Shown: positions 11,330-16,464, counted from the first letter of the stretch. The stretch is 64,000 bases of DNA from Oopsacas minuta (GCA_024704765.1 JAKMXF010000317.1:310160-374159), one strand, 5' to 3'. Made by a program: numbers and translations. The notes: generated from the sequence alone by a model not told the origin.

Positions 11330-12052
11330 TTGTTTTGAATCATTTACAAGTCTAATAAAAAACTTCCTGAGCAGCATAAATGTTATGAGGAACACAATCA
11401 TCCATTTTCGCCTGAAAGGATTTCCAACCAGTGCAAACTGAGTTTGTGCTATTTCTGGAACTATCGAGAGAATTCATTTTCAATTTAAAAGATTTGCCGA
11501 TTTCATAATTGCTGTCTTCACAATAACTGCCTAGGTGAGAAACATCGCTAATCTCCCAGCATTTATCTTCCCCTCCAAGAGATCAAGCATTACTTGAAAA
11601 GCACAGAGCTTATCTACAAATTCATAATTTTGCTTTCATTTCTTGCATGACGTGTTCAGAGTGTTGAGCCTTTCAGAAATGTCACAGAGATAACAAAGTT
11701 TAGATATCCACTCTTTGTCATCGAAAAATCAAGCCAATGCATTTTCTATTGGAGCATTCTACTGTTTCATCTTTCAGATCGAGAAAACGTTACAATACAT
11801 TGCCCCCTGAAAGCCATGGAACTTCAGTATGGTACAGTTCATCCTTTTGGACTGCATCCATCCATAAATAAAGGTTTCGATAGAGACGTGTGTTAAGTCA
11901 CTACTTTTGACAAAATTTACGTTGTTTAATTTACTATTTTAATCACTTCCTGTGAGACTAAATTTAGAGTTGATTGTAGAGTTTTTGAAGCAAGTGCCTC
12001 TAAATGTATCATACAGTGATTCGTAATCACACCTGGAGCAACCTGTTTAACG
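11330..12052 (-). pseudogene. Buster/Charlie (ZBED5/ZBED8-like) hAT transposase fossil, 3' half
   Basis: Minus-strand translation VKQVAPGVITNHCMIHLEALASKTL...VIKIVN, LYHTEVPWLSGGNVL*RF, WISKLCYLCDI, DKLCAFQ, ENEFSR*FPE..LVGNPF; many stops and frameshifts. Confidence 0.88.
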
Positions 12053-12220
12053 ATTTATGATGTAGATAAGCCCAGATTAGCAGATGAAATAATTTTCATG
12101 TGTCATGCTGGGGTGAGATCAAAACTTGCTGCTAAAATAGCACGTGCAGCTGGTTATACATTAATACGTGAATATGCTGATGGATTGATTGGATGGAAAA
12201 AACGAATTAACTTGAAATAA
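12050..12220 (+). pseudogene. 3' fragment of a single-domain rhodanese (TSTD1/TSTD3-like thiosulfate sulfurtransferase)
   Basis: Frame TIYDVDKPRLADEIIFMCHAGVRSKLAAKIARAAGYTLIREYADGLIGWKKRINLK*; contains the rhodanese CxxGxR active-site loop and C-terminal Y-x-x-G-x-x-x-W signature; truncated at its 5' end by the Buster junction. Not in the supplied ORF track. Confidence 0.82.
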
Positions 12221-12599
12221 CTTGAATATCAATTCTTCCAAATTTGTTTAATTATTTGTTTTTATATTAATGGAAATATCCAAAGTATCTTTATATCAAA
12301 TCTCCTTATTTAGTTATACTTATAATTATTAGTATTAATGAAATTAAAATTATTTTTTGAGCATTTTTTGTGTTTAATTCACCTACAAGGTCCTTCCTTG
12401 TCGTTGGAGGAGTTTTAAAATACTACAAGGATATTAGGAGAGATCTAGCCGTTCCCATTATTTATTACTCTTATACACACCTAATTATAATTACTAATGA
12501 GGTCATTGGCTCTTATTGACTTTCTTCGCATTGAAGTATATTATCTATATTAACATGTTCAATTCGCCAACATATTCTGTTTAGCTCCTTAGTTCGTAT

Positions 12600-12867
12600 A
12601 TAATAATCATAATAATAATAATAATAATAATAATAATAATAATAATAATAATAATAATAATAATAATAATAATAATAATAATAATAATAATAATAATAAT
12701 AATAATAATATAATAATAATAATAATAATAATAATAATAAAATAATAATAATAATAATAATAATAATAATAATAATAATAATAATAATAATAATAATAAT
12801 AATAATAATAATAATAATAATAATAATAATAATAATAATAATAATAATAGTAAATAATAATAATAAT
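12600..12867. repeat. (TAA)n microsatellite, ~270 bp
   Basis: Near-perfect trinucleotide run with a few interruptions. Confidence 0.98.
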
Positions 12868-15045: not shown

Positions 15046-15273
15046 ATCTGCAGTGTATACGTGTAGCCAAATTTACCAATTGATAATTAATCGTGTTTAT
15101 TGCATTTTATTGCATAATTTACGGCCTATTCTTAAAGAGTCATATATTAACCTGATCAAGTATCACTTCACATATGTAATTTGAACGTTTTACCTATTTA
15201 GGTGGTATGTGTATATTACAGCATACTGTTGACAGAGCGAGTATATCTTCCAATTCCTTTGACTATTGTGTAG

Positions 15274-15750
15274 ATGTTCTTACGAATTATTCCATCTTAC
15301 TTTTCACTGTATCTCTCCATCTGTTCATTGCTTTTCAAACCCTGTTTTTTCTCCAGCCAGAGCTGGCATAGAATCAGTGAAATCATTGAGTTGCATTTGA
15401 GAGACGGACATCCTTGTTTGAAAATTCCTCTCGTATCCAGACAGGGTAATGTATTGTCATACCTGAAGCCTATTACAGATACTGTGGGCAGCTTAGTATC
15501 ACACATACGATAGGAAGATCCAGGTCTGCAATAAGTGGAGCTGATGAGTACTGAAGGGGACAGATTTGCACTCTCCTCTCCTGTCAAACACCTTCTATTT
15601 GGGAACTTTGACCTCCAGCTGAATGACAAGCGCTACAGAGTAAACCTGACAGAGCAATTGAAGATAAAATCAGGTCTAGACGTTAGTAGTGAATTGTCTA
15701 ATGAAATAGGAGAAGTAAAGAATTCTATTCACAAACTGTATGTAGCTCTT
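15274..15750 (+). pseudogene. MCU: 5' fragment of mitochondrial calcium uniporter (presequence-like N terminus + N-terminal domain), two in-frame stops, truncated before the TM/DIME region
   Basis: Single frame ...LRDGHPCLKIPLVSRQGNVLSYLKPITDTVGSLVSHIR*EDPGLQ*VELMSTEGDRFALSSPVKHLLFGNFDLQLNDKRYRV...IGEVKNSIHKLYVAL aligns by eye with the MCU N-terminal domain (LKPISDSVG, EEDRGI, FKLVIND, LNDVKTLVQQLY; recalled reference). Stops at 15511-15513 and 15532-15534. Confidence 0.85.
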
Positions 15751-16464
15751 ACGCGAACTTGGAAACCAGAAGACTTCTCACCATAAAAGGAGCTCCATCT
15801 GTGCATACAGCGCTAACTTTATGACAATCAAGTGGCCGAGAGAAAACCAACTCTTCTTTGAAATCACAATTGTGGATTTAACGTACATATACCATAAGCT
15901 GAGCACAAAAAGAAACATCTGTTGACTCGTCCAATTGTAAAACATAAATTGATGACTGTTAAATCAGCTCTACTACTTGGTTCTTTATACCTTCCGACAT
16001 TTCTTCAATTCTGCGTTGAACAGTGTAATCAGAATGTGACAGAGAACTTAGCTTCTTCACTGCGTCCGCCTCAAACATAAATCGCACAATGTCTTTCGTG
16101 CAAGGCTACACTACCTCTTCACCAATGGTATGAAGTTTCTCACATTTTGCAATCGCAGTGAAACAACATAAGTCACTTCAACTGAGCTCTTGTGCTTGCA
16201 AATGTCTGTCCATTAGTGTCAAGTCTAGACTTCTTTACAGAATCTGCTTTTCTCTCGAAGATTGAAACATCTCGATCTGTGTATGTTGGATGTTCCTTCT
16301 CAAAATGTCTCTTAAGCTTGAACGGCTTCATGGACTCTGCCAGATAATTTTTTAATGCATTCCACATATTGTGGCTTTTCAATATTTTGCGTTACTAAAC
16401 TGGCATATCCAAATTGGAGATAATCATCTGATTAAGGACACTTAGGAGCACGTTTCGTAGCCAT
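15751..16464 (-). pseudogene. Buster/Charlie (ZBED8-like) hAT transposase fossil, 5' half
   Basis: From ATG 16464: ...DDYLQFG...EKPQ...AESMKPFKLKRHFEKEH...RKADSVKKSRLD, then QLDESTDVSFCAQLMVYVR, AVCTDGAPFM, SGFQVR ending at 15751; stops, frameshifts and an internal deletion. Confidence 0.88.

Follow-up and report, generated by a model that had tools for sequence, protein, structure and literature searches.

How does a complete host gene, accompanied by pieces of both its neighbors, come to lie inside the reading frame of a transposase? The question is raised by a 64,000-nt stretch of DNA from the glass sponge Oopsacas minuta (G000:C317:310160-374159; hereafter the window), in which positions 12053-15750 separate the two halves of a decayed hAT transposase, putatively of the Buster subgroup (hereafter Buster). 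An earlier note on this locus, made from the sequence alone, had interpreted the interruption as a templated genomic insertion and had listed break repair, reintegration of an extrachromosomal circle and capture during hAT gap repair (as in Pack-type transposable elements, TEs) as possible routes. The evidence makes it very probable that a copy of a locus on another contig, C297, was inserted by DNA-level repair into a Buster element that was already dead.

A copy of the C297 locus inside one transposase

A whole-genome search showed that the interval 12053-15750 has exactly one second copy, at C297:198900-202299 with 89-91% identity, and that all remaining matches were to its simple repeat only. 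When window positions 8000-20000 were compared by BLAST with 26 kb of C297, homology was limited to 12045-12607 and 12971-15751, and in pairwise alignments the similarity stopped abruptly at both the left and the right junction. The insert (+ strand) is identified as a 3.7-kb copy of G000:C297:198890-202300 by its colinearity with that locus, the presence of two genomic copies and the sharp ends of homology.

The earlier note had predicted that a donor would carry a full rhodanese gene, the gene of no known family found in the insert (gene X) and a full mitochondrial calcium uniporter gene (MCU) in the same order, and such a locus exists at C297. It consists of a complete 171-aa rhodanese open reading frame (ORF; PF00581, 56.2 bits against a Pfam gathering cutoff of 22.2), a 677-aa gene X on the opposite strand (C297:199549-201582) and a complete 311-aa MCU ORF (PF04678, 156.1 bits; gathering cutoff 30.8), followed by a DPH3-type CSL zinc-finger gene and then a calpain gene. 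The copied segment runs from approximately codon 116 of rhodanese to codon 159 of MCU, the latter within the Pfam MCU domain (residues 81-288), so that both of its limits fall in coding ORFs at the donor, as the note's description of an insert that starts mid-rhodanese and ends mid-MCU had implied. The gene order DPH3-MCU-geneX-geneX-rhodanese also occurs in another species (ENA ERZ25071281, ctg49602: 754081-768093; L041), whose gene X homolog is 48% identical. Since the same order is found in another species, the C297 arrangement is ancestral; C297 is the donor, copying proceeded from C297 to C317, and the donor locus was left intact.

The transposase halves that enclose this copy both lie on the minus strand. 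The 3′ half (11336-12052) extends up to position 2037 of an uninterrupted family member, L028, and is 70% identical to uninterrupted copies; the 5′ half (15754-16474, start codon 16464-16462) is 79-80% identical to family copies, the family match on this side spanning 15747-16474. Searching the genome with each half recovered a dozen or more uninterrupted elements, each ~2.4 kb long, and ten of these run ...CTGTCTAACGCGTGTCTGG... straight across the break point. At the same point the window has ...CTGTTTAACG at the end of the left half, then the insert, then (A)CGCGAACTTGG... at the start of the right half. Given this exact rejoining and the read-through in ten family copies, the halves are adjacent parts of one element from which no Buster sequence is missing, and the claim that they rejoin exactly and belong to a single family stands. 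The family copies carry ACG once, within ...TAACGCG..., whereas the window carries ACG (or CG) twice: a left copy at 12050-12052, assigned by comparison with the family copies, and a right copy at 15751-15753, assigned by comparison with family and donor, whose A is equally attributable to the donor. Both had been reported earlier, with the suggestion that they might not be a target-site duplication (TSD). Indeed, the duplication is not a hAT insertion signature, because the family's own insertions generate 8-bp duplications.

These observations bear on the idea of an assembly artefact, in which a chimeric join would have set C297-like sequence into Buster. The O. minuta genome, 15.4% of which consists of DNA transposons, is a hybrid Illumina/PacBio assembly, a SPAdes draft of 2023 (PMC10280926), and a draft of this kind gives the idea some footing. 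It is nevertheless scarcely credible, as the 9-11% difference from C297, together with a microsatellite and nonsense mutations of its own, marks the insert as a separate genomic copy, and two junctions at the same Buster point with a 3-bp overlap are not what mis-joining at a repeat would yield.

Two other origins were considered and rejected. A retrocopy would not take in portions of three genes from opposite strands along with the two spacers, nor lack a terminal A-run, and the note's claim of duplication without retrotransposition was borne out on these grounds. Carriage by a Helitron-type or other TE was likewise rejected: the copied segment begins and ends inside coding ORFs at the donor, no terminal inverted repeat (TIR) was found in the window, and a whole-genome search for other Buster copies with the same cargo, as had been proposed, returned none.

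Decay of the host relic and route of insertion

The uninterrupted relatives of the host element include a young hAT/Buster family represented by L028 (G000:C55:264495-268031) and ~12 further loci (L014-L036), with 95-98% mutual identity. Its ends consist of CAGGGGTTTTCAACC TIRs and 8-bp TSDs (e.g., CTCTAAAA and ATCTACAC) with a central TA, and the family may have been recently active. Because the window halves are too broken for a direct test, hAT domain membership was examined on L028, which matched the hAT C-terminal dimerization domain PF05699 with E = 1e-5, a score that exceeds the Pfam cutoff, and also PF14291 (DUF4371-type) with E = 1.6e-4, below the cutoff. In this C55 copy, one frameshift divides the transposase into ORFs of 267 and 363 aa. 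Two further ORFs of 141 and 144 aa (L028:64-862) extend up to its TIR, and the copy appears to be nested in the coding region of another transposase-like gene.

The window element is in a very different state. Relative to the family ORF, its halves diverge by 16-24, 12-17, and 33-38% at codon positions 1, 2, and 3, respectively, and contain 14 indels in ~1360 nt, mostly 1-2 nt long; the 3′ half has 9 stops in one frame and 11 of these indels, and the 5′ half has 14 stops in one frame. By comparison, the dead rhodanese and MCU fragments of the insert have no indels relative to the donor in 656 nt (p = 0.007 for the contrast), and their divergence at second codon positions is 4-6% as against 12-17% in Buster. 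The Buster halves are thus the more decayed sequence, and the difference in indels and in second-position divergence indicates that the element was already dead at the time of insertion, having decayed for a considerable period beforehand, in agreement with the order of events first proposed.

No TIR was found anywhere in the window by a pattern search allowing 3 mismatches, sensitive blastn with the expected terminal regions gave only weak, unconvincing matches, and no 8-bp TSD was detectable around the copy. The note's report of a missing 5′ TIR therefore holds, and the window Buster is a relic without recognizable ends. The expected site of its 3′ end (10950-11312) is occupied by two adjoining short interspersed repeats that are 75-79% identical to dozens of genomic loci. 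On the opposite side, an intact gene for a 399-aa coiled-coil and NHL-repeat protein (PF01436; 16803-18002, minus strand) starts ~340 bp past the Buster start codon, leaving too little room for the ~440-bp 5′ end of the young family. The relic may have been truncated as the NHL cluster expanded.

The state of the host element also bears on transposition-dependent capture (Pack-hAT), in which an active Buster would have excised and the cargo been gained during abortive repair of the resulting gap, the composite perhaps having transposed to its present position. The cargo does lie inside a hAT element, and the young family with its good TIRs and TSDs implies that hAT transposase was probably available in this genome at some time. 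This route is nonetheless highly improbable. Abortive gap repair replaces internal sequence, but no Buster sequence was lost at the break; there is no detectable TIR or TSD around the window copy and only one cargo-bearing copy; and decay is much more advanced in the Buster halves, which share just 70-80% identity with the young family, than in the insert. Among the routes listed in the earlier note, then, break repair is retained, gap-repair capture is disfavored for want of TE loss, TIRs and further copies, and reintegration of an extrachromosomal circle is disfavored because insert and donor are colinear, with no permutation.

How the copy was made is suggested by the junctions. On the left, the Buster octamer GTTTAACG that precedes the break matches the donor octamer GTTTAAGG at 7 of 8 positions, and the donor octamer stops 2 nt short of where the copied segment begins. 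When these sequences were paired at random 200,000 times, a 7/8 match within 0-4 nt arose with a probability of ~0.003. The right junction has 0-1 nt of homology with the donor. The left-junction match favors priming on the donor, and within the repair insertion as a whole, primed DNA synthesis on the donor, whether by synthesis-dependent strand annealing (SDSA) or by template switching, is reasonably probable. The right junction, which shares at most one base, points to end joining of the released strand.

An alternative without primed synthesis is that a free linear C297 fragment, either a by-product of replication or repair or a re-linearized circle, was ligated into the Buster break by non-homologous end joining. 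The right junction, with its single nucleotide of homology at most, would suit such a ligation, as would the left one if it is read literally as blunt, and a target duplication of 2-3 bp is compatible with fill-in of a staggered break. Yeast provides documented cases in which linear fragments were captured at breaks (PMC1976456). We consider this alternative improbable, however, as the 7/8 match at the left junction is not readily explained by chance, a circle reopened at random would have permuted an insert that is in fact strictly colinear, and the intact donor means that an extra copy of the fragment would be needed in any case.

Primed repair has several points against it as well. The microhomology requires that an A-run lost 2 nt, either during priming or later (donor GGAAATTT, window CGATTT), and the left-junction test was devised after the junction had been seen; for both reasons, blunt ligation of a free fragment keeps the small share of probability given to it above. 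The junctions are known from a single assembly, and no other assembly record encodes the window gene X product. In addition, the intergenic spacers of the insert have accumulated 10 indels in ~560 nt (both lineages combined), a per-lineage rate about equal to that of Buster, and since these AT-rich spacers are so rich in indels, the argument for an older Buster holds for the comparison of coding-like with coding-like sequence only.

Under repair by primed synthesis, the sequence of events would have been as follows. In an old, inactive Buster/hAT copy on C317, the DNA would have broken or a replication fork would have collapsed, and the broken 3′ end, terminating in the octamer described above, would have annealed to its near-identical counterpart in the donor rhodanese gene. 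Extension over ~3.4 kb would then have copied the 3′ end of rhodanese, all of gene X together with the region upstream of it, and MCU as far as codon 159, after which the new strand would have left its template and end joining, with 0-1 nt of homology, would have attached it to the opposite side of the Buster break. At the site, such a repair would leave a duplication of 2-3 bp (CG/ACG) and no loss of Buster sequence; with the donor retained, a complete gene would have been duplicated along with its promoter, at the DNA level and to a dispersed position. Thereafter, the two gene fragments would have decayed and a microsatellite would have grown in the 3′ spacer, while the gene X copy would have stayed open and evolved rapidly.

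The copied genes

The rhodanese fragment at the left end of the insert (12053-12220, + strand) aligns with the donor C-terminus and comprises the last 55 codons and the stop, without a start codon or promoter; it has diverged from the donor by 6.2% at the nucleotide level. Between this fragment and gene X lies an (ATA)n microsatellite of ~90 units (12600-12867), delimited with Tandem Repeats Finder. A repeat tract had been noted here before, to which we add that it is specific to the window and missing from the equivalent interval of the donor. At the right end, the MCU fragment (15274-15751, + strand) contains the first 159 codons, as judged by its translation against the donor 311-aa MCU, and shows 4.0% divergence and no indels, with 2 nonsense codons in 478 nt, at 15511-15513 and 15532-15534. 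An 83-codon ORF (15535-15786, + strand) runs from the MCU fragment over the right junction into antisense Buster, adding 11 new codons; as it sits downstream of the two nonsense codons, it is probably meaningless. The divergent intergenic region between the gene X start and the MCU start was copied as well (15046-15273; aligned with L011:4584-4823), with 11% divergence and indels of 3, 1, 2, 14, and 4 nt. It presumably contains a shared promoter.

The intact 676-aa gene described in the earlier note is confirmed as a single-exon ORF at 13015-15045 on the minus strand. Gene X encodes a multi-pass membrane protein that belongs to no known family, and the window copy is 83% identical in amino acid sequence to its donor, LOD99_4185. 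Hydropathy analysis predicts ~8 transmembrane (TM) segments, a 235-residue ectodomain that bears Cys residues and is rich in sequons, and a C-terminal TM segment. There was no Pfam match, a profile search of the PDB gave no credible match (best E = 0.25), and a protein-atlas feature search returned only sub-threshold leads to the 7-TM families THH1/TOM1, GPR137, and PRRT3 (scores of 0.81 or lower). An AlphaFold2 model built from a 9-sequence alignment was poor (pLDDT 51).

Homologs of gene X have so far been found solely in O. minuta and in ENA assemblies. In O. minuta, distant paralogs lie at C33:164512-166164 (32% aa identity) and C361:21206-21727. In ENA ERZ25071281, a tandem pair of gene X copies (685 and 670 aa) lies between MCU and rhodanese, and from this tandem pair it appears that the gene X family has been duplicated independently at least twice.

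Comparison of the window and donor copies of gene X revealed 163 substitutions, amounting to ~8% nucleotide difference overall, and no stop codon. All five indels are in frame (3, 3, 9, 3, and 15 nt), whereas 9 of the 10 indels in the spacers are not multiples of 3. When neutral decay was simulated with 80-120 substitutions, the frame stayed open in 0.2-7% of trials. Other features of the pair weaken the case for function. Its dN/dS is 0.94-1.4, and when amino acid changes were polarized with seven outgroups, the window copy held 55 of the 78 derived residues as opposed to 23 in the donor (p = 4e-4), so that the window protein has changed 2.4 times faster. Only amino acid changes were polarized, since in the outgroups, which share no more than 48% aa identity, synonymous sites are saturated. 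The window copy also avoids columns that are invariant in the outgroups only weakly (6 changes vs. 11 expected, p = 0.09). Our reading of these data is that the frame appears to have been maintained while the protein came under relaxed or diversifying selection, and the new copy may be functional.

A 190-nt run at 14315-14504 is fully identical between window and donor, synonymous sites included, and takes in the membrane segment with the highest conservation, around FVFACHFNIWEL. The identity could reflect a short tract of gene conversion between the two loci or a constraint at the nucleotide level.

Preservation of the gene X frame, together with the 2.4-fold faster change of its protein, also points to a broader possibility: the patching of TE relics with distant gene-bearing DNA would repeatedly give rise to new whole genes in this compact, DNA-transposon-rich genome, with the gene X copy as a functional, fast-diversifying paralog. 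We put this forward only tentatively and think it rather unlikely.

Relation to known systems

The locus is an unusually legible case of the duplication of a whole gene and its presumed promoter by a route other than retrotransposition or unequal crossing-over. Donor, acceptor and both junctions can be read, as can the pre-insertion state, which is preserved in sister copies of the transposon; insertions into TEs are the easiest events of this kind to recognize. The event has also left a dated pair of paralogs of a membrane protein without a known family, as material for studying the early fate of duplicates.

With the Pack-MULE and Pack-hAT elements the locus shares the placement of host gene sequence between two parts of a DNA transposon, but here there are no TIRs, no TSD, no amplification and no replacement of internal TE sequence. 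It is closer to the templated insertions and to the products of fork stalling and template switching or microhomology-mediated break-induced replication (FoSTeS/MMBIR), in that a distant template was evidently copied, one junction shows microhomology and the return falls no more than 2-3 nt from where the switch began. FoSTeS/MMBIR and SDSA followed by end joining give the same junctions and are inseparable on sequence alone.

A plant counterpart is the "patching" model of Wicker, Buchmann and Keller (2010) for grasses, in which, as described in PMC3503983, gene-bearing fragments are copied into double-strand breaks. The likeness extends to break repair, through SDSA or end joining, as the means by which a gene is copied with pieces of its neighbors, to the retention of the donor and to the presence of TEs at the acceptor site. 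The plant model differs in that the break often results from insertion or excision of a TE, whereas here the putative break lies within a TE that was already dead, with no sign of a TE as its cause.

The route of duplication is already known and has been cataloged in animals (PMC8277862), and the locus reveals no new mechanism. Tan et al. (2021, Nat Commun) identified 370 Pack-TIRs in 100 animal genomes and ascribed those present in single copy to transposition-independent gap filling, often after inactivation of the TE; these have internal breakpoints, small TE gaps and microhomologies of 1-36 bp (median 2 bp), the captured pieces have a median length of 224 bp, and donors are biased towards nearby loci (PMC8277862). 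None of the words sponge, Porifera, and Amphimedon appears in the main text of that paper (PMC8277862). The O. minuta locus departs from this class in three respects: the TIRs of its host element, a formal feature of Pack-TIRs, are undetectable; its cargo is 3.7 kb long and includes a whole gene plus the region upstream of it; and its donor lies on another contig. Like a Pack-TIR, on the other hand, it consists of a non-TE segment flanked on both sides by one TE of the TIR class and has a parental copy elsewhere. It resembles the transposition-independent subclass further in being single-copy, in the inactivity of its host element, in its internal breakpoints with little or no TE gap and in its breakpoint microhomology (here an imperfect 7/8 on the left and 0-1 nt on the right). 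Transposition-independent, gap-filling duplication of the Pack-TIR kind would thereby extend to a glass sponge, with a whole-gene cargo far above the animal median.

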